Below are positions 11,470-23,408 of a DNA stretch of 64,000 nucleotides, piece by piece. The notes beneath the pieces were generated by a model that searched no databases, had not been told where the DNA came from, and worked only from the letters and a program-made list of their open reading frames with translations. The DNA comes from Nageia nagi. Its lineage: Eukaryota > Plantae > Pinophyta. Both the position numbers and the translations under genes were made by a program. Positions within the stretch are counted from its first letter, which is position 1; each line of letters begins with the position of its first letter. The stretch lies in NCBI GenBank assembly GCA_050084985.1, contig JBITNC010000001.1, positions 110,484,001-110,548,000 of the forward strand, read 5' to 3'.

Positions 11470-12030
11470 AACCATAGAGTCAAACCTTGGTGTATTTTTT
11501 TATTTTTTTTCTCATTCTAATTTTATTACTAACTCTACTACCCATGTTAGACATAGAGTCAAGCTTGGCATTAGGAAAACATAATGAAAGAGTCAAGCAT
11601 AATGTCAGGGGCATCAAAAATAGAGTTAGACATCATGTGTAGAAGAGTTAGCCATAGAATCAATTCAAATTTAGTCATAGAGTCAAAAAAGCTATAAGAT
11701 AAAGTCAGCCATAAAGTTATAATAAAGTAAAAAAAGCTACGAGGTAGAGTCAGGCATAGCATTAGAATAAAATCGAAAAAGCTTTAAGGTAGAGTCAATC
11801 ATAGAGTTAGAATAGAGGTAGAAGAGGTATAATGTAAAGTTAGCCATAGAGTCATTTGAGAGTCAATTTTAGAGTCAATTTGGAGTCAATTTTAAAGTCC
11901 ATTTAGATTCAATTTTAGAGTCAATTTAGATTCAACTTTAGAGTCAGATTAGATTCAATTTTAAAGTTAATTTAGATTTTGTTTAGATTCAATTTGAGTC
12001 AATGTAGATTCAATTTTAGAGTTAGAATTC
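11470..12030 (+). repeat. Left subterminal repeat cluster (ATAGAGTCA / TTTAGAGTCAAT units)
   Basis: Many degenerate ~10-12 bp units; the same motif recurs at 13905-13960 and 20695-21025. Confidence 0.75.
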
Positions 12031-13030: not shown

Positions 13031-13989
13031 CGATGTAATAATTTAATTTAATTTAATTATACAAAATTATAATATAATTTAATTTAAACTTAAAATTCAT
13101 TTTTTTAATTTAATATTTTATAGTTAATTTAATTTATAACTAATTAAAAAATAATAATTTTAATTTAATTTATGACTAATTAAAAAAATAAAAAATAAAA
13201 AAATTTATGCTATCAATTACATTATAGAATTTCCAATTATAGAATTTCTAAAATCAAAGAAGAAGAATTTCAAAAATCAAGAGAGAAGAGAGTATAGAAT
13301 TTCAAATTACATTTGGTATGTTGTTTCTAATTTATAAGTTTTCTAGTTAAATTATGAGAATTTTTGTAATTAGGGTTTTATTTGTGCTTGGTAGGTTTCA
13401 AATTTCTTGATTGGGGTTTAAATTTTAGTGGGGTTTTGCAAAATTAGTTGATTTTAGCTAAACTTAAGTGTGTTTTTGCTAAATTTTAGTGGGTTTTAGC
13501 TAAATTTATTAAAACTAAAAAAATTTAGGAAAAACCCTAGCTTGCAACTATTGAAATCATGAAAACCTGCAAAATTTGACAAAAACTACAAAAAATCTAT
13601 TGAAGAATAATGCCTTTCTTCAAGAAATTTCAAAATACAACATTAAATATCTAAAACCCTACAAATTTTAGCTTTTTATACTAAAAATGTAAAAAAAAAA
13701 AAAAGAAAAGAAGAAGAAAAACCTATAAAATGAAAGAATGGTTGGACAAATTTGGTTGATCACCCAAATCACCTTTGGAAGCCTTAAAAAAACTCCCTCC
13801 ACTACCAACTCATACTTTTGGGTGAGAATGGATGAAATAAAACAAATAGTAAAAGAGATAGTGATGTTTGGTGAGGCCATTTTTTAATTTGCAAGTGATT
13901 TTTAGCTCTATTTCTGACTCCCTATGGAGTTAGACATAGAGTCAATTATAGAGTTATTAAAAGAAATAATATTTAAAAAATATTAATGA

Positions 13990-14235
13990 GTTATGGGTTA
14001 GCATTAGGGTTAGGGGTTATGGGTTAGGGCTACAGGTTAGGGTTAAGGGTTATGTGTTAAGGTTAACATTAGGGGTTAGTGTTAGGGGTAGAGATTAGGG
14101 GTTAGTGTTAGGCATAGGGGTAGGGGTTAGGGGTTAGGGTTTAGGTTTGTCGGTTATGGGTTAGGGTTAGGGGTAAGGGTAGGGGTTATTGGTTATGGTT
14201 AGCATCAAGTATTAGTGTTTATGATAAGGGTTAGT
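13990..14235 (+). repeat. Degenerate telomere-like array (TTAGGG/TTAGGGG)n, G-strand on +
   Basis: Runs such as ggggttagggggttagggtttagg and gggttagggttaggggtaagggt. Confidence 0.9.
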
Positions 14236-14840
14236 TATTATAGTTTAAATATTAGTTTTTATTATTATTTTATTCATTATAGTTTAAATATTATTTTTTT
14301 AGGATTATGAGTTCACATTTATTATTTAACTAATTAAGTTATTTTAATTATAATGTAGGTAAGTGCTTCTATATTAACCATGCCATGCAAATAGAGGAAA
14401 TATGTGTCATAAGATGATGATGATGCCCATGAGCCATCAAATGATGAACTAGTATATATATCAGTAGATGATGTCTCATCAAATGATGATGACGATGTTA
14501 ATGAGGATGATATTAATGATGATATGAATGATGTTGATGATGATGTGGATGATGATTCTAATGAGGATGAGGTCTATATGTCTTTAATTAACACACATGC
14601 TATTATAATTATGGAAAATAGTAAAATTCATTTAAAATTTCACTTAAAGGATCTTGTTTGCAAATATGTAATTATATTTTAACATTGTGGTTTATGTTTT
14701 AGGAAGCAAATTAGAGAAATCATGAATATTATTCATCTTTAGAAGATGATTAAGATACGGAGGTAATTAGAATCAAAATTATAATTTCCTTTAAATTTTT
14801 ATCATATGTATTTTATTTATAATATTTTTGACTTAATTAG

Positions 14841-16020
14841 GCCCAACAAAAATACCTTGTATCCATAATTAAGACACAATGTAGAAGAGATCATGTTACC
14901 TCAGAGTTATGTCGAGCAAGATGTGCTTTTCTAGGACCTACACCAATTATTGATGGAGAGAAGATTGGATTTAATGCTACTCTCACTCTTTACTTCAATG
15001 CATCAGTTATATGTAGGTGTTCAATCTATAAGGGTTATAAAAAGCATCAACGAGAACTTGTAGAAGTATATTATTATATTCTTGATGAGTTTCCAAATAT
15101 AGATGAAAAAATACCCCCTACAGTTTCCAAATATAGATGGAAAAATACCCCCCTATAGTTTCCAAATATCCCATCAGTCTAGTTGAATCAACTATATGTC
15201 TTGATCATCTTCAAGAATTTTGACATGATGATATTATGGCACATAAGTTAGCTATAATATTTCTTGATTCATCAAATGAAGAAGGACATATTGTTGAAAT
15301 AGGAAGGGGAAGATCAAGACATTAAGGACAACATCACCAACCAGTACTAAATGTGGAGCCATATGTTCTACCATTAGAGGATGTTCATAATTTTTCCTTA
15401 CTAGATAAACTTGTAGCTTTGTATTAGACTTCATATGCATGTGAGACAATCAATGCATGGCCAACTAATGTACCTTTTTCAAAAGTTTATTAGGGATTCA
15501 ATTATTATAGAAATTCATACATCATAAACATTCTGATATAGATGGTAGTGGGATGGGTTTGTTTATTCAATCTCCTATAAAAGTTACTCTAGGTGTTGTG
15601 GTACTAGTATTGATGTCATTTTGTGGGCTAGTTTACAAAAGATCAAACTAGATTCAATTAGCAACATATAGGTTTAGTATGGCCATATATGGTTTGTGTG
15701 GAAATTCCCAATCAAAATAAGATATTTCAAAATGTGTCTACATTGATAGTCAGCAAAAGATAAATGGAAATATTGTAGGGTACATAAATAGTTCCAAAGT
15801 AAGATTATTTCCTTTGAATTATCAATTTCATGAATATGCAAATGATTATGAAACATTCATGAGTAGGAAATTGAAAATTTTTGTATGTGTAGTTCCTATT
15901 TGATCTCTCATGGTGGGAGATGAAATACTAGTGCACTACAATTATAATAGACCTATTCCTCCATATAACAGATATTTGGAGTTAGGAGGTCCTAGTAATA
16001 GTTGAATAATGTTGTAGTAG
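14841..16020 (+). pseudogene. Large decayed exon encoding a transposase-associated Cys motif plus a SET domain
   Basis: Follows an AG acceptor at 14840. Reads ...VICRCSIYKGYKKHQRELVE..., then SYII(K)HSDIDGSGMGLF (15514-15564), LMSFCG, VYIDSQQKINGNIVGYINSS (~15735-15795) and VCVVPI*SLMVGDEILVHYNY (15883-15945). The in-frame stops in the SET frame (TAG ~15649, TAA 15718, TGA 15901) are each one transition from TGG/CAA/CGA. Confidence 0.8.
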
Positions 16021-16375
16021 GCAATTTATGACTCCTTTTTGGTACTCAATTCATTGTTTATTTAAAAAATGCAATGAAGGTTGGTTAGCAAAGATATATG
16101 TAATGGATGTTATTAAACATTGCTTGCTAAAACTATTGATATTAATCCATTATTTAGAGTTGCTTGTTCAAATTAATAAAGTTATTTGTTGAAGTTGTTG
16201 AATTTTATTGAAAGTTAATTAGTAGTTGAAATTATTAGTGCTAATTTTTTCTTACAATTTTGATATATATTAAGATACACTTGTTAGAATGTTATATTTT
16301 GATACAATTAATGTTACTCATTGTCCATCTATTATATTTTGATACAATTTTCATTAGTAACAACTATTTTGATAG

Positions 16376-19300
16376 GAACATGATGAGAACCCAAATGTAA
16401 TAACTTATGTACCATGTGTGAATCATGAAAGAATAAAGTATCATAAAAGGAGTAAACTATAAAGTATACTAAGTGAAGAAGCATATGAACATTTCCTCAT
16501 AGACCCCAATCCAATAGCTCCAGTTAAGATACACATGGATTTTGATAAAAGTGATAATGATGAAGGAGAGGACAATGTCCCACAAGATGAACATAGGACA
16601 TTGGATGATGTGATTGAGTTAATTTTTCCAAATAAAAATGATGATGTGGATATGGATGATACTCATACATAGGATGATGTGTTTGAGCATGACACTTTGT
16701 ATAGTGCTTCGAAAACCCCCTTATATGAAGGAGCACATGTTACCAAGTTATTGATGACCTTACTACTAATGACTTTAAGAACAAACTATGGATGGTCAGA
16801 TACAAGTTTTCATGCTTTATTGGCATATGTATTTTTTCTAATATTTTACTTCATATAAATTTATATGAAGTAAAATATGAATTTAATTAATAAATTCCAC
16901 TCTACCATACTGGATGTAGGGGTAGAGTGGAATTTATATGATACTTGTATTAAGAATTGCATATTATATAGAGGATGCTTTGAAACATTGATAAAATTTC
17001 CAAAGTGTGGTTCAGAAAGATACCACTTTGAACTCAAGGGTCTATTATTCCTCAAAATGTTTTTCAACATATGTTAATAATTCTTTGATTATGTATATTA
17101 TTTTGATGTAATTCCATTTCATAATATATGGATTGACATGCAAAAAATATAAGTGAAGAAGGTGTGTTACGTATTCTTGTAGATAGTAGAATAATGAAAC
17201 ATATCGAAAATACATGGCTTGATAAATTTTAGAATGAACCTAGGAGTGTCAGATTAGGTTTTTCATTTGATGGTATCAATTCATTTTCCATACAATCATC
17301 TCATTATACAATTTGGCCTATTGTTGTACTCACTTATAACATACCACCATGGATGACTATGAAAAAAGAACATATGATGTTGATTGTTATAGTCCTTGAA
17401 ATACATAAAGTGAAAAATGTGGATGTCTTCCTAGAGCTAGTAATTGATGAATTGATGCAACTTTGGAATGGAATTCAAAATATGGTTGACAGAAATAGAC
17501 CTATCTAACAAATATCATTCATAATGTACTACATGACTATCTAGGACTTAAGGTTTATTCAGGTATTATAAACTTTTTATTACATGTACATTTATAAAAT
17601 AATAATATATTGTAATATTTTGTTTTATTTTAATAGATAATATTGTTGTATTCTCTAATAAAATTGATTTTAGGCTTTCATGTTGCAAGTTATCATGCAT
17701 GTCATGAGTATGCAAAAAATATCCCAACATATTGATATTCTAATCACTTAAAAAAGGATGAATACCTTTGCAATAAAAATATTTACCAATGGATCATAAA
17801 TTTCAAACAATGAAATCTAAGTTCAATTATCAAGATGATTTCACCCCCATTCCTCAACCTGCATCTCTTAGGTATTGGTTTGAAAAGTATAAAGAATGAG
17901 AAGAAATATGTTTGATTAAGGCCTTTGAGGATGGTATAGTTAAATGTCCAAATGAGGTTATTATTGGCAAAGATGATCTACCACTTGGTGAAATTTAACA
18001 ATGTATATCAAAATATTTATTAATTTGATAGTATTTTGCAGTATTCTAATTTACCAATTGAATGATTAATTTTATATATACTATTTTAGGCATGAACCGA
18101 CTAGCAATACTTTGAAAACTACCATATTGGAAGAACCTATTAGTGGTACATTTAATAGATCCTATTCAAGTTGTAAAGAATTTAGCACATTGGTTGTATT
18201 GGTATATAACTAAAAAATTCTTAGATACTATTGCATTTAGATAGGACTTAGAAGATACCAATACCAAGAAAGATTTGTGGATCAAATATGATGCAAATGG
18301 GAAGGTGCTCACACCACCTACTTTCCCATGGCTTATGAAATGAGGAGAATTGAATGAAGTAGAAAATATTCTAAAAATTATTAGAACACTAATGGGGTAT
18401 TAATCTATCTAAAAAATGCATTCACTATTAATGGGAAACTTATAGGATTAAAGTATCATGACTACCACAACTTCTTGAAGGCATGATTTTCATGTTACAT
18501 GCATTTTTTATTGATATAATAAACTTATAACAATTTTAAAGTTGCACTAGTATGTACATATTCATTAATTTATAGCATATTTTTCCAATTGCAATTCATG
18601 GATGTCTGAGTTTACCTCTTGATCTAAGAACAATAATTGGTCAACTATCATTATTTTTAAGGTATATGATAAAATCAATATTTTTTATTATTAGTTTTTA
18701 ATTTTTTATATGCATATATGGTGACATATTATAATTTTTTGAATGATGGCATTTTTCATAAATAGGTGGTTAACTTGAAAGGACATACATGTGGTTGAAA
18801 TAAGTAGATGGCATAGAGAAGCTATAGAGATTATATGTAGATTTGAAAAGGAAATGCTAGCTACTTTTATGATGATTCAAATCACTTATTGATACACCTT
18901 GTACATGATGTCGAAACAATAGATGTTGTAAGTAGTAGAAACATGTTTTTTGTTGAGAGATATTTAAAAGAGCTAAAGGATTTGTTAGACAAAGGGCATG
19001 ATTATAAGGATCCATGGGTGAGGGGTATATTGCAAGTGAATCTTTATTCTATGCATCTAAATATGTTTCCCAAATCCATCCTAGAACACCAAATATGTGG
19101 GATGTGGATAAAGATAAAGACAAATTAAAAGGGGAGGTTTTAGAAACAAAAGGGAAATAATTTTCTGTTAAAGATACCAAGTACATTAATATTTTATATT
19201 CAGCTACTAACTTAAAATAATTCATACATGATGCAATAATTTGGATATTTTCATGTAATCAATAACTACTTATAATGAGTTTATATGATATCATTTTCAA

Positions 19301-20175
19301 ATATAAGTCATGAGTTGTATAAATCTTTGAACAATTTTATCATGATGAATATGGAATGTTGCAAAGAGTATATTGCATTGCATAATAGTAAAAAAGCACA
19401 ATTACATAAGAATATCATGCATTTTGTAATACCAATCCAAGGACCCCTATACCTATACATTTGAGAGACCATAGTTGGCTAAAAGAGTGTCCATGATCAT
19501 GGCTGAAGGATACAATTGAAGAAAAAGAAAGTAAAGATGAAAATGTAGATGAAGATGCATCCAATATAGTAATTAGATGTAATTCAATAGTAATTATTTT
19601 TTTATTCATATGCATTTGGTTTTAGATATTTTAGAAAAACTATAGTTGCTTCATTCATAAATAAAATGATTGTACTAATGTCATTTTCATGAAAATGTAT
19701 ATGCAGGCATTATCTTTCCCAAGAATGTGGGCATATGGTCAACACTTTAGAATTGAAAAGAATGATGAGAAAAAAATCACATTTTACTATGGAGTGGTGG
19801 TTGATTTTGAAAAAGCAAGTCATGCAAGTGTAAAAGATACAAATTGGATTGAAAGAAGCTTAGATTATTATGGAAAAATTTAAGAAATTATTGAATTGAA
19901 TTAGGTCATTCAAGTGTTTCATGTTAAGATGTAAATGGTATCAAAGATCAATCATGCATGATGCTCCTAATAATTATATTGCAATTGATTCCACAAATTA
20001 GCTACCTAAATATGAAGAACCTTATGTCTTATCACAACATTGTGATCAAATATATTTTATTCTAGATATATTGGATAAAAATGTGGTTTGTAATCAAGTG
20101 TGCTCCTAGAGGAAGACACATTGTACATTCTATTCTTAATACTGAACTCAATGATACTATCAAAGAAGATATTTG
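16376..20175 (+). pseudogene. CACTA TnpD/Tnp2 transposase pseudogene (Transposase_21 + DUF4218 + DUF4216-like), intron-containing
   Basis: PLYEG..YGWSDTSFHALL, EPRSVRLGFSFDGINSF..WPIVVLTYNIPPW, LPYWKNLL..HLIDPIQVVKN, GLKYHDYH, IHLVH..MFFVERYLKELK, DYYGKI*EIIEL, LRCKWY and EEPYVLSQHCDQ. AT-rich GT-AG gaps separate the motif blocks. Confidence 0.9.
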
Positions 20176-20399: not shown

Positions 20400-20692
20400 A
20401 CTCTTAACCCCTAATGCTAACCATAACACCTAACCCTAACCCCTAACCCTTACCCCTAATACTAACCCTAACACATAACCCTTACCCCTATTGCTAACCC
20501 ATATATAACCCTTAATGTACCATAAACCTTAACCCTAACCCCTAATGTTAACCCTTAACCCTAACCCTTAACTCTAACCCTCATGCTAACCCTAACACAT
20601 AACCCTAAACCCTTACCCTTAACCTTAATTACCCCCTATAATTCGTAACCCTAACCATTGACTCTAGTCCTTAACCCTTGACACTAACCCTT
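20400..20692 (-). repeat. Degenerate telomere-like array (CCCTAA)n on +, inverted relative to 13990-14235
   Basis: Runs such as taaccctaaccctaaacccttacccctaat and aaccttaaccctaacccctaat. Confidence 0.9.
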
Positions 20693-20694
20693 AA

Positions 20695-21025
20695 TAGAGT
20701 TAGAAAAGAGTGAGAAATAGAGTTAAAAAATAGTTTGAAATAGCTTTAGAAATAGAATCAGAATGTAATGATCTTACAATCAGGAATAGATTTAGTATGA
20801 AATCAAAATAAAAACTAGTTTAGAGTCATAAATAATGTAAGGCATCAAGATTAAAACTAATTTAGAGTTAGAAATAGAGTTATAATGGCATCAAATTCTA
20901 GTTATATTAGAGTCAAAATAGCATCAACATGGTAGCATCAGATATAGACTTAGACTAAAATTATAGGGAAAAAATAATTAGAGTAAAGAATAGAGTCAGA
21001 ATGGTGTAAGACATGGAGTTAGAAA
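20695..21025 (+). repeat. Right subterminal repeat cluster (TAGAGTTAGAAA / AGAGTCA)
   Basis: Same motif family as 11470-12030. Confidence 0.72.
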
Positions 21026-21159
21026 GTTGTCAAAAATGGAATTTGTTAAGAACTAATGCTTTTCTAATAATTATTGATGCAAATGGCATCAAAACAATCA
21101 TGAATTTTATTTCTAACACTATTTCCAACTCTAAAAATGCATATTCTAGAGTAATTTAA

Positions 21160-21500
21160 AGATATAAGGATCAAAAGAATATTTAACAAAATGCATGATG
21201 GAAAGAAAATTTCATGGAATACAATGATCATAGGATATGCACAAAATGGGTTTTCTAAAAAGAATCTAGCATGATACCACATAATTTTATGGATTGTAAT
21301 GATCATAAGGTACACACTAAATATATTGCATCTTATGTTGTACTTTAAAAGTCCTTGATGTGATGAAGCACTTGGGAATCAACCCTAACAACATAACCTT
21401 TGTATGTGTTCTACTTGCATGTAGCCATGGAGGTCTAATAGATGAGTGTTGTAAGGAATTTAATACAATAAGTGACTTTTATTGAATTATTTTTTAGATG
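21160..21500 (+). pseudogene. PLS/E-class pentatricopeptide repeat (PPR) gene relic
   Basis: IFNKMHDGKKISWNTMIIGYAQNGF and MKHLGINPNNITFVCVLLACSHGGLIDE (L2 motif), leading into MNHYTYIVDLLGH (S2). Confidence 0.88.
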
Positions 21501-23270
21501 AATCATTATACATATATTGTTGACCTTCTTGGCCATGTAGAATATCCTCAAGGAGCTTTGAATTTAATTTTCAAAATACCCACAAAACCTAAATTAGGTA
21601 TGTGGATGTACATCTACTTAGTTCTTGTAAATAATTATTGTGGTTTTGAATGCCTTGATAGATATGTATCCAAAATGTTAATCAAACCCTTACAACATGA
21701 GGGACACTTATTATATTATTAATAAGATGAATAATTATATATGCATTGTTTACCTTCTTGATCATACAAGCTATCCTTAAGGACCTTTGAAATTCATTGC
21801 TAAAATACCCATAAAACTTGAATTGGGTGTATGGATGTATCTATGTGGTGCTTGTAAATCAAATCTAGTTTTGAAGGCCCTCATAGATATATATTTAAAA
21901 TGTGAAACAAACCCTTATAGCATGAAAGAATCTTATTGTATTATTCCTAATATGAATAATTATACATGCATTGTTGATCTTCTTGACCATGCAGGCTATC
22001 CTAAAGGCGCTTTGCACTTCATTACAAAAATACCCATAAAACTTGAATTGGGTATATGGATGGTTCTACTTGGTACTTGTAAATTGAATGATATGATTTT
22101 GAATGCCTTGATAGATATTTATGTAAAATGTAGAACAAACCCTTCTAACATGAGGGAATCTTATTATATTATTCCATGGGATGAATAATTATACATGCAT
22201 TGCTGATCTTCTTGATCATCTATGCTATTCTTAGGCAACTTTGAACTACATTACTAAAATACCCATAAAATCTAAATTGGGTATGTGGATTTATTTATTT
22301 GGTGCTTATAGATTGAATGTTGAGGTTTTGAATGCCCAAATAGACATGTACATGAAATATAAATAAACCTTTACAACATGAGAGAATCCTATTGCATTAT
22401 TCTTGAGATGAATCACTATACATATATTATCAATCTTCTTAGTTGTGTAGGCTATCATGAGGTAAATTTAAACTTCATTACCTAAATACTTATAAAATCT
22501 AAATTAAGTGTGTGGATGTGTATACTTGGTGGTCATAAATTAATTATTATGGATTTTAATGACCAAATAGACATATTTGTAAAATATGAAAAAATTCCTT
22601 ACAACATGAAATACTCTTATTACATTATTCTAGATATGAATCATTATACATGCAATGGTTACATTCTTGGTCATGCAAGCTAGCCTAAAAGAACTTTGAA
22701 CTTCATTTCCAAAATACCCATAAAACCTAAATTGGGTGTGTAGATGTATCTACTTGATGCTTGTAAATTACATGTTATGGTTTTGAATGCCCTGATAGAC
22801 ATGTATGCAAAATATAGACAAAACCATTACAACATTTGGGAATCTTATTACATTATTCCTAGGATGAATTATTATACATACATTATTGATCTTCCTAGCC
22901 ATAAAGGATATCCTTAGGGATATTTGAACTTCATTTCCAAAATATCAATAAAACCTAAAGTGGATGTGTCTACTTGGTACTTGTAAATCAAATGTTTTGG
23001 TTTTGAATGCCTTGCTAGACATGTATGCAAAATATGAAATAAACCCCTATAGAATGAGGGGAACTTATTATATATTCCTAGGATGAATCATTATACATAC
23101 ATTATTAACCTTCTTGGCTATCCAGGCTATCCTTAAGGAGATTTGAACTTCATCATAAAAAAACACATAAGGCCTTACTTAGGTGTGTAGATGTGTCTAC
23201 TTGGTCCTTGTAAATCAAATGTTATAGTTTTTAATTCCTTGATAGATATGTATGCAAAATATGAAAGAAT
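21498..23270 (+). repeat. Tandem array of ~8 PPR-derived ~228-bp units
   Basis: ATGAAT[CA]ATTATA recurs at ~21498, 21726, 21952, 22180, 22408, 22636, 22863 and 23082. Each unit is MNHYTCIVDLL..IPIKP / LGVWM.LLGAC / NALIDMYAK / NPYSMRESYCIIP. Confidence 0.93.
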
Positions 23271-23408
23271 ACACATAGCTTGGAATTATATGATTAATAA
23301 TATGTATGATGCAAACATAGTTTCATAATATGCAATGATTGTAAGATACATACAAAATGGGTTTTATGAAAATAGCCCTAGATACTTTTATTCTAGAACC
23401 ATTATAAT

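Follow-up and report, generated by a model that had tools for sequence, protein, structure and literature searches.

A decayed CACTA/EnSpm-like transposon copy of Nageia nagi and the probable SET gene of its family

Transposons that carry chromatin enzymes of their own are few, and a SET gene is rare cargo among them. Among the known cases, TET/JBP genes occur in fungal KDZ and Plavaka elements, SET genes occur in HarbingerS, in MuDR of oomycetes and in the Plavaka elements of red algae, and VANC is carried by VANDAL elements. In the 64,000-nucleotide stretch of Nageia nagi DNA that was analysed here (the window), an earlier sequence-only reading had proposed a CACTA transposon encoding a SET (lysine methyltransferase) domain, probably fused to its transposase. 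The locus thus raises the question of whether a plant-type CACTA family possesses a SET gene of its own, and in what form. If this is true, a Tnp2-type family with its own SET gene would extend chromatin-enzyme cargo to plant-type CACTA elements, and would offer a definite protein to express and assay as a possible histone or protein methyltransferase encoded by a transposon. The region from ~13.9 to 20.7 kb very probably represents one inactive copy of a Tnp2-type (CACTA/EnSpm-like) element, whose family carries a SET gene immediately upstream of the transposase, on the same strand and in a separate frame (Table 1). The family is abundant; the window copy itself is long dead, a functionless fossil that makes nothing.

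Table 1. Coordinates of the features of the element within the window
Feature	Position	Strand	Basis
Outermost left inverted arm	13899-13920		Local alignment of left flank with reverse complement of right flank
Left subterminal array, telomere-like GGGTTAG-type	13986-14245		blastn self-comparison and repeat search
Acidic D/E/N-rich open stretch, candidate 5' exon	14413-14571	+	Translation and sequence; inference only
SET gene exon	14841-16005	+	Ancestral open frame of ~375 codons; translation, matches of relatives
CRCSIYKG motif, then (D)VEVxYY; CGCSxCKG in relatives	15012-15035	+	Translation, relatives
Private tandem duplication of ~35 bp, +2 frame shift	15122-15156	+	Sequence; other copies
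1-bp deletion just before the SET domain	15525-15526	+	Frame change; family contigs
SET domain remnant	15532-15951	+	HMM of Pfam-SET-positive relatives; tblastn with P0014 and L014 SET ORF
SET motif I, GSGMGLF	15544-15564	+	Translation
SET motif II, FCG within FCGLVY	15619-15636	+	Translation
SET motif III, YID...GNIVGYINSS	15766-15795	+	Translation
LNYQF, tail of motif III (GNIVGYINSS...LNY)	15814-15828	+	Translation
SET motif IV, GDEILVHY	15916-15939	+	Translation
AT-rich spacer/intron-like gap, SET stop to first transposase exon	16006-16375	+	Sequence
TnpD-type transposase N-terminal region, partly acidic, ...PLYEGAHVTKLL...GWSDTSF	16376-16855	+	tblastn
Zinc-ribbon CIKNCILYRG...CPKCGSERY and Transposase_21 (Tnp2) core	16907-17505	+	Pfam, L014 ORF
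Transposase middle region and DUF4218	18089-19125	+	Pfam PF13960; tblastn with L014 ORFs
C-terminal transposase piece, DUF4216-like by transitivity only	19665-19880	+	tblastn
Right subterminal array, telomere-like CCCTAAC-type	20405-20695		blastn self-comparison and repeat search
Outermost right inverted arm	20708-20729		Local alignment of left flank with reverse complement of right flank

The element measures ~6.8 kb. Its outermost arms pair at 20 of 22 bases, and the two subterminal arrays are mutually inverted, as in CACTA/EnSpm elements. TAGTG is absent from 20651-21300, the sole CACTA (at 13800) has no partner, and no target-site duplication was found in the flanks; the CACTA/TAGTG ends may be decayed or mis-delimited. 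None of the pieces submitted to Pfam matched PF03004 (Transposase_24, TnpA-type). The candidate 5' exon ends at a phase-0 donor, GAG/GT, at 14571/14572 (the slash marks the splice site, here and below). From 19880 to the right array, scant space is left for a second, TnpA-type gene. The region 56.5-59.1 kb of the minus strand was considered as another copy and rejected, as it gave weak tblastn matches, an HMM E-value of 4 and no Tnp2.

The SET exon opens behind an acceptor (...taattag/GCC) at 14840/14841 and closes with a TGA at 16003-16005, a stop shared with the related lineages L001/2/3/5 and with P0014, a stop-free ORF of 177 amino acids on another contig. Once the duplication and the 1-bp deletion are taken out, 14841-16002 forms a single frame that includes CRCSIYKG. 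Its first 105 residues (14841-15155) are 43-47% identical to L001, L002, L004, L005/6 and L015, where the matching region likewise lies upstream of SET. The CRC motif described by the sequence-only reading is indeed present and is similar to the Cys motif in the transposase-associated domain; the name can be given to it only as putative, since PF13963 reached this region in L014 (E 0.032) and L016 (E 0.066) alone, both far under the cut-off, and had zero Pfam matches in the window lineage.

All the SET motifs follow each other in one frame (codons from 15511), and the window matches in order the canonical set (GxG; YxG; (R)FINHSCxPN; ELxF/YDY with the terminal Tyr). The family consensus reads hGlGlF, eYvGP, GNIaGfINSt...NC and aGdELlidY, and Ser stands in place of the NHS His in the window and in all family members. 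The pre-SET, AWS and post-SET Cys regions of SUV39/SET2/ASH1-type enzymes are missing: the frame stops 4-45 codons past the terminal Tyr without a CxCxxxxC, and no Cys cluster directly precedes the domain. This agrees with the minimal SET appearance noted earlier, as do the nearest language-model neighbours, small SET proteins from oomycetes, haptophytes and giant viruses (SET clusters of the protein atlas score 0.94), and sub-threshold Pfam matches of relatives to PRDM2_PR, a PR domain.

In the window copy the SET exon is interrupted by 7 in-frame stops, and a ~35-bp duplication and a 1-bp deletion break its frame. Four stops lie upstream of the SET domain (15221, 15323, 15425 and 15491) and three within it (TAG at 15649, TAA at 15718 and TGA at 15901). 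The latter three are compatible with the C>T or G>A changes by which they had been explained, and relatives carry W (TGG), Q and R at these places; the stop at 15425 is private, every family contig having an A there. Between 500 and 4000 contigs in each of four DNA runs align to the stretch at at least 80% identity, and the differences are mostly transitions. All runs aligned to the stretch are of DNA, and no RNA run matched it. Contigs of the four runs omit 35 bp at 15121-15159. About half of the aligned family contigs have an extra A after 15525, indicating that the window copy suffered a 1-bp deletion, and the frame changes at ~15525, in agreement with the 1-bp frameshift that had been read near 15526.

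The SET identity of the domain is best seen through its relatives. Nine stop-free relatives from metagenome contigs reach 22.4 bits, the gathering threshold of Pfam SET, the best with 43 bits and an E-value of 5e-11 (L017 43.4, L018 40.0, L020 35.0, L022 34.7, L019 30.5, L026 28.2, L025 25.9 and L027 24.2 bits, with L014 at 22.4, exactly the threshold). An HMM built from SET-positive distant relatives only was run against the six frames of the window, with stops read as X; its sole significant match was 15532-15951, at 76 bits (E 1e-24), and the four motifs that had been read in order by eye lie in one frame there. In tblastn searches P0014 aligned to 15526-15996 in one frame with 43% identity (E 9e-29), and the SET ORF of L014 matched the SET region of the window with an E-value of 3e-18. 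By sequence comparison, the window peptide belongs to a protein family in which intact members are recognised by Pfam SET. The family profile A5, in which the window lineage is included, had 32 PDB matches, all of them SET lysine methyltransferases, with LegAS4 as the best (3e-5), followed by KMT2A/B, EZH2 and ATXR5/6.

Direct searches with the window copy gave a different result. Because of the stops its SET pieces were searched separately, and the stop-free pieces matched neither Pfam SET, at E-values up to 10, nor any PDB sequence by phmmer. The closest relatives stay under the Pfam SET threshold (P0013 with 16 bits, E 0.017; P0014 and P0002 negative), and PDB profile searches based on alignments A2 and A4, both shallow, found nothing. 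A 60-residue piece compared by phmmer with 1.84 billion representatives matched short fragment ORFs only; the long phmmer matches (P0001, P0004 and P0009-P0012) were discarded as repeat-protein noise. A search for homologous proteins with the same piece returned no candidate within the permitted range of lengths. For the L018 domain AF2 gave a poor model (pLDDT 55.5, pTM 0.50), and its top 50 Foldseek matches were all SET proteins, the best with E 8e-3 and TM ~0.3 and none reaching E 1e-3; a VIA comparison of the same model gave Z values of up to 6.3 for SMYD2, vSET and MLL1. The AF2 model of P0014, based on 11 sequences, was unusable (pLDDT 38). The profile check set by the sequence-only reading was thus negative for the window pieces and positive for relatives that link to them; in the structure check the top 50 matches of the L018 model were weak, though all SET.

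Tnp2 exons had been described on the same strand past the AT-rich gap, and they were confirmed there: Transposase_21 (PF02992) matches 17233-17505 with 89 bits (E 3e-25), and DUF4218 (PF13960) matches 18847-19125 with 27.3 bits, barely over the cut-off of 27. The gap offers candidate acceptors at 16356/16357 and 16375/16376, and in the alignment with relatives conservation restarts at an acceptor of the type ...TTTTRCAG/GCA; the sequence of the window lineage is too decayed for its intron/exon borders to be placed by DNA alignment. The stretches 16463-16669 and 16673-16855 match L003/4, L005/6, L009/10, L012 and L013 by tblastn, the N-terminal ORF of L014 matches 16709-16825, and the Tnp2 ORF of L014 matches 16907-17502 with an E-value of 1e-33. 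The C-terminal piece at 19665-19880 has no direct Pfam match; it corresponds to L003 (4342-4521), L009 and L012, where the DUF4216 ORF of L026 also matches.

SET with Tnp2 behind it on one strand was observed in L003/4, L005/6, L009/10, L012, L013, L014, L026 and L027, so that the linkage of the homologues to CACTA transposases, proposed earlier as a check, holds in several divergent lineages. Pfam identifies Transposase_21 (1.5e-58) and DUF4218 (5e-27) in L014, and Tnp2, DUF4218 and DUF4216 in L026. No Tnp2 was found within 3-4 kb downstream of SET in clade B, which has the best SET scores and whose transposon context is therefore only putative. Between lineages the SET domains share 21-47% identity and the Tnp2 regions 39-61%, both varying together (r = 0.65). 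The presence of SET upstream of Transposase_21/DUF4218 in at least three divergent lineages argues that it is old cargo, a gene of the transposon family itself, and not a one-off capture.

The SET frame of related lineages is under purifying selection, with dN/dS values of 0.13-0.38 in clade B and 0.19-0.41 in clade C compared to ~1 for off-frame controls, whereas the window lineage is near neutral (0.6-0.8, with intervals overlapping those of the off-frame controls). Neutral dN/dS among family members, which had been named as evidence against the proposal, was thus approached in the window lineage and not in its relatives (0.13-0.4). The position of the SET gene is conserved over deeply diverged lineages, with purifying selection in some of them.

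Several other explanations of the locus were considered. Chance resemblance of the motifs to SET in AT-rich decayed DNA would agree with the failure of the window pieces and of the closest relatives in Pfam and PDB sequence searches, but it is refuted by the Pfam SET scores of the relatives and by the 76-bit match of their HMM to this one place in six frames; the homology chain via P0014 and L014 is also highly significant, and the probability left to chance is practically negligible. A different origin would be a piece of a host gene that was transduplicated once or recently, as in Pack-CACTA elements, and that would serve the element in no way. CACTA elements do capture host gene fragments, and clade B, without a visible transposase nearby, might conceivably be a family of host genes or the donor. 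Such an origin is nevertheless very improbable, given that the position and orientation of SET relative to Tnp2 are constant even where SET shares only 21-40% identity, that the divergences of the two co-vary, and that relatives have a complete frame with its own conserved stop and low dN/dS. Clade B is itself multi-copy, with 134 members in one cluster at 90% identity, and some of its copies are decayed.

The fusion suggested by the sequence-only reading would imply one spliced mRNA encoding the Cys motif, SET and Tnp2 in a single polypeptide, similar to SETMAR but mobile. Both parts lie near each other on the same strand in constant order, the first transposase exon of the window lineage has no obvious in-frame ATG, and the sole motif resembling that of the transposase-associated domain is upstream of SET. 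Furthermore, the SET exon of clade B closes with a canonical phase-0 donor (GAG/GTACAT...TTGCAG/GG in L017, GCG/GTACGT in L018) and more exons come after; these exons, however, are not Tnp2. Each Tnp2-linked lineage with sequence at this place has a conserved SET stop, which contradicts the fusion: HYEW[D/N]-stop in L025, L026 and L027, ...APNPI-stop in L014, and ...CSR[D/N]-stop in L001, L002, L003, L005 and P0014, corresponding to the TGA at 16003 in the window. No in-phase GT donor was seen ahead of the stop in L014 or L026, and the transposase exon of L014 starts with an ATG right after its acceptor. Fusion is therefore improbable, and we retain a SET gene with a frame separate from that of the transposase.

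The gene of the window lineage would have consisted of a single exon of ~375 codons, coding for an N-terminal Cys-motif region and a minimal, very divergent SET domain and ending in its own stop. In active ancestors the product would have been an accessory protein separate from the transposase, made from the transposase transcription unit, and the two products may have arisen by alternative splicing, as in En/Spm. Since the AdoMet-binding and catalytic-Tyr motifs are kept, this protein most likely methylated a lysine, probably in a histone, another chromatin protein or a transposition protein located on the element or close to it; with Ser in place of the NHS His throughout the family, catalysis is not assured. 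As a tentative possibility, a widespread, previously unannotated Tnp2-type lineage of plants may long have kept its own active lysine methyltransferase, as a separate product of the transposase transcription unit that places a histone mark on the element, or modifies a host or transposition protein there, and thereby escapes or tunes silencing, and intact relatives under selection and in high copy number (clades B and C and L014) may still do so in some living species. Rather unlikely, in our view, is a non-enzymatic role in which a dead SET or PR-like protein serves as an adaptor binding histone tails or partners, as inactive PR domains do. The His-to-Ser change in every lineage, the sub-threshold PRDM2_PR matches and the absence of a post-SET region would be in line with such a role, and purifying selection is indicative of function, not of catalysis. 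However, GxG, Y/FxG, GN..(F/Y)IN and the terminal Tyr of G[DE]E[LI]L..Y are kept across lineages, and LegAS4, the best PDB match, has NFS at the place of NHS and has been described as an active enzyme.

SETMAR, a domesticated and immobile host fusion of SET with a mariner transposase, resembles the family in that SET adjoins a DDE-type transposase on one strand; it differs in that the SET of the window family has its own conserved stop and sits in a mobile element. The best profile and fold matches (LegAS4, KMT2/MLL, EZH2, ATXR5/6, SMYD2 and the chlorella virus vSET) are small SET methyltransferases that have GxG, YxG, GN..(F/Y)IN..NC and GEEL..Y in common with the family, and LegAS4 also lacks the NHS His. 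Identity to them is only ~20-29% over 65-90 aligned residues, the loop from INS[ST] to NC is longer in the family, and the family has no post-SET.

We found no published precedent for a SET gene in land-plant CACTA elements; the precedents concern other transposon groups and red-algal Plavaka elements. In the red alga Bostrychia moritziana, Plavaka elements (EnSpm/CACTA superfamily) are 17-19 kb long and have three accessory genes, of which PAG2 joins a DNA methylase (PF01555) to SET (bioRxiv 10.1101/2025.02.11.637652). PAG2, which was compared by its description, is alike in belonging to the CACTA superfamily, in being a Pfam SET accessory gene beside the transposase and in having mostly degenerate copies, whereas the present element is ~6.8 kb long, with a Tnp2/DUF4218-type transposase and one small, stand-alone SET gene upstream. 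Pfam scans of the window and of its relatives detected no DNA methylase domain. SET histone methyltransferases are encoded by HarbingerS and by Phytophthora MuDR families, as PMC12730594 relates from Kojima and Jurka (Repbase Reports 2014), and SET capture by Helitrons is cited in bioRxiv 10.1101/2025.02.11.637652. As far as these descriptions go, they are likewise DNA transposons with a SET gene as their own cargo, but they belong to other superfamilies and other hosts (oomycetes and others). The VANC anti-silencing proteins of Arabidopsis VANDAL elements (MULE), cited in PMC12730594 and bioRxiv 10.1101/2025.02.11.637652, are likewise accessory proteins encoded by a transposon and are proposed to influence the chromatin state of their own element, as the SET protein of the present family may do. 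VANC has no SET domain and works by sequence-specific hypomethylation.

For annotation, the use of Pfam alone overlooks the decayed members of the family. The family profile picks up 709 proteins of the database, and among the matches listed two are labelled 'SET domain-containing', the others being unnamed or 'hypothetical'.

Translation of the + strand of the window, with codons counted from 15511, gave the motifs GSGMGLF, FCGLVY, YIDSQQKINGNIVGYINSS, LNYQF and GDEILVHY in this order in one frame of about 140 codons interrupted by three stops, as the sequence-only reading had claimed. The 1-bp frameshift that it had placed ahead of the SET domain was also found, and about half of the family contigs from public DNA runs aligned to the window have an extra A after 15525. 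Several of these contigs skip 35 bp at 15121-15159, and both lesions therefore belong to the window copy or its near kin. Without the duplication and the 1-bp lesion, 14841-16002 is a single frame of about 375 codons. The upstream stop at 15425 is private to the window copy, as all family contigs have A at that site. Upstream of the SET exon lies a strongly acidic, D/E/N-rich open stretch (14413-14571) with a phase-0 donor, which is possibly a shared 5' exon.

Features of the transposon copy in the window and 3' ends of the SET frame in related loci
Feature	Position or loci	Strand	Basis or detail
Outermost inverted match	13899-13920 with 20708-20729		
Inverted subterminal arrays	13986-14245 and 20405-20695		degenerate, telomere-like GGGTTAG / CCCTAAC type, ~260-290 bp per side
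SET exon, 5' border	before 14841	+	good acceptor taattag/GCC; sequence
Tandem duplication, ~35 bp (second frame change)	about 15122-15156	+	sequence
Stops in upstream part of exon	15221, 15323, 15425, 15491	+	sequence
1-base frame change	~15525, just upstream of SET motifs	+	translation
In-frame stops inside SET frame	15649 TAG, 15718 TAA, 15901 TGA	+	sequence
SET exon, 3' border	TGA 16003	+	sequence
Transposase (ORFs of relative L014)	16709-19100		
Transposase_21	17233-17505		Pfam, E 3e-25
DUF4218	18847-19125		Pfam
SET 3' end ...CSR(D/N)-stop	L001, L002, L003, L005, P0014		window AGT TGA ATA ATG at 16003
SET 3' end ...APNPI-stop	L014		
SET 3' end HYEW(D/N)-stop	L025, L026, L027		

The stops split the window frame into pieces, with no read-through, and intact relatives were sought as stand-ins. 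The stop-free pieces gave no SET match in Pfam at E up to 10 and no match in PDB by phmmer. A phmmer search of 1.84 billion representatives with a 60-aa piece returned six short fragment ORFs, the rest being noise, and one fragment, P0002, led to P0014, a stop-free ORF of 177 aa that spans the entire domain and matches window 15526-15996 in one frame (43% identity, E 9e-29). The closest relatives fall under the Pfam SET gathering score of 22.4 bits (P0013, 16 bits, E 0.017; P0014, no score). Scanning metagenome contigs with the family alignment yielded 28 loci (L001-L028) of 70-25% identity, and stop-free relatives scored 43.4 bits (L017, E 5e-11), 40.0 (L018), 35.0 (L020), 34.7 (L022), 30.5 (L019), 28.2 (L026), 25.9 (L025), 24.2 (L027) and 22.4 (L014, equal to the gathering score). 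An HMM built from the distant SET-positive relatives alone had a single match in the six-frame translation of the window, with stops treated as X, at 15532-15951 (76 bits, E 1e-24).

The A5 profile of the SET family (28 sequences, window lineage included) matched 32 PDB sequences, all of them SET lysine methyltransferases, the best being LegAS4 (3e-5), followed by KMT2A/B, EZH2 and ATXR5/6. Protein atlas neighbours of the relative P0022 are small SET proteins of oomycetes, haptophytes and giant viruses. Ser replaces the His of the NHS motif across the whole family; LegAS4 has NFS at this position in the PDB profile alignment. The AF2 model of the L018 domain was only moderate (pLDDT 55.5, pTM 0.50); its top 50 Foldseek matches were all SET proteins, none as good as E 1e-3, and a second look with VIA gave Z up to 6.3, for SMYD2, vSET and MLL1. 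We conclude that the window peptide is genuinely a SET domain, although a highly divergent one.

CACTA...TAGTG termini were sought at the element ends and none was found, so that it is the type of transposase together with the subterminal arrays that supports the name 'CACTA'. A search with the ORFs of L014, a better-preserved relative, found only one such element in the 64-kb window. Immediately to the right of it, a tandem run of PPR-like open frames (LIDMYAKC-type motifs) occupies 21360-23330. The GC content is 24-39% (mostly 25-31%) over all 64 kb, and transitions predominate in the differences between the thousands of family contigs, which fits long-term deamination of methylated repeats.

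The proposed presence of a SET gene in a CACTA-type family was borne out across divergent lineages: Tnp2 (Transposase_21 core) exons lie 0.7-1.1 kb 3' of the SET frame, on the same strand, in L003/4, L005/6, L009/10, L012, L013, L014, L026 and L027. L014 (37% GC) has Transposase_21 (1.5e-58) and DUF4218 (5e-27), and L026 (41% GC) has Tnp2, DUF4218 and DUF4216. Among the Tnp2-linked lineages, identity is 21-47% for SET and 39-61% for the Tnp2 cores, and the two divergences co-vary (r = 0.65, ten non-independent pairs). Judged from these sequences, a one-off capture is ruled out for the SET frame. In L005, the forward Tnp2 exons are directly followed by a second Tnp2 fragment in inverted orientation (11743-12028, minus strand), which points to a copy that is rearranged or nested.

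The sequence-only reading also had the SET domain as probably fused to the transposase, but this was not supported: wherever a Tnp2-linked lineage has sequence at this point, the SET frame closes with a stop common to independent copies, and no in-phase GT donor precedes it in L014 and L026. In L014, an upstream exon whose Cys motif weakly resembles the transposase-associated type (PF13963, E 0.03) joins the SET exon in phase 0 via a 76-nt GT...AG intron (TTG/GTAATT ... TATAG/GTC), and the acceptor of the first transposase exon is likewise in phase 0 (CAG/ATG); skipping the SET exon would therefore keep the frame. An En/Spm-like unit with two products, one ending in SET and another skipping the SET exon, would fit this arrangement.

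Selection was assessed from Nei-Gojobori estimates of dN/dS, which were bootstrapped for intervals and compared with an off-frame control. Deep pairs gave 0.13-0.38 in clade B (L017-L024 and L028) and clade C gave 0.19-0.41, with off-frame controls of about 0.7-2; SET was therefore a functional gene in these relatives. Shallow pairs of clade B gave about 1. In the window lineage dN/dS was 0.6-0.8, with intervals overlapping 1 and the off-frame values (0.85-1.0). The window copy, like its close kin, has drifted neutrally and is a fossil.

No publication describing a SET gene in CACTA elements of land plants came up in full-text literature searches. SET genes are listed for HarbingerS and Phytophthora MuDR families (Repbase Reports 2014, as cited in PMC12730594) and Helitrons with captured SET are cited in bioRxiv 10.1101/2025.02.11.637652; in the Plavaka branch of the EnSpm/CACTA superfamily, the accessory gene PAG2 of red-alga elements combines a DNA methylase and SET (bioRxiv 10.1101/2025.02.11.637652).

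Clade B, known from JGI, ENA and Logan metagenome contigs of 32-39% GC, has the highest SET scores and predominates among the 709 database proteins matching the family profile. It is multi-copy (one 90%-identity cluster has n=134), and a stretch of 3.8 kb common to L019 and L023 is 82% identical. A canonical phase-0 donor terminates its SET exon, non-Tnp2 exons follow, and no Tnp2 was found within 3-4 kb downstream. Its members (proteins P0017-P0133) are high-copy, intact or nearly intact SET genes under purifying selection. In L024, an open frame of the Ty1/copia type for reverse transcriptase / RNase H (3-1069), identified by eye, lies some 6 kb 5' of the SET exon.
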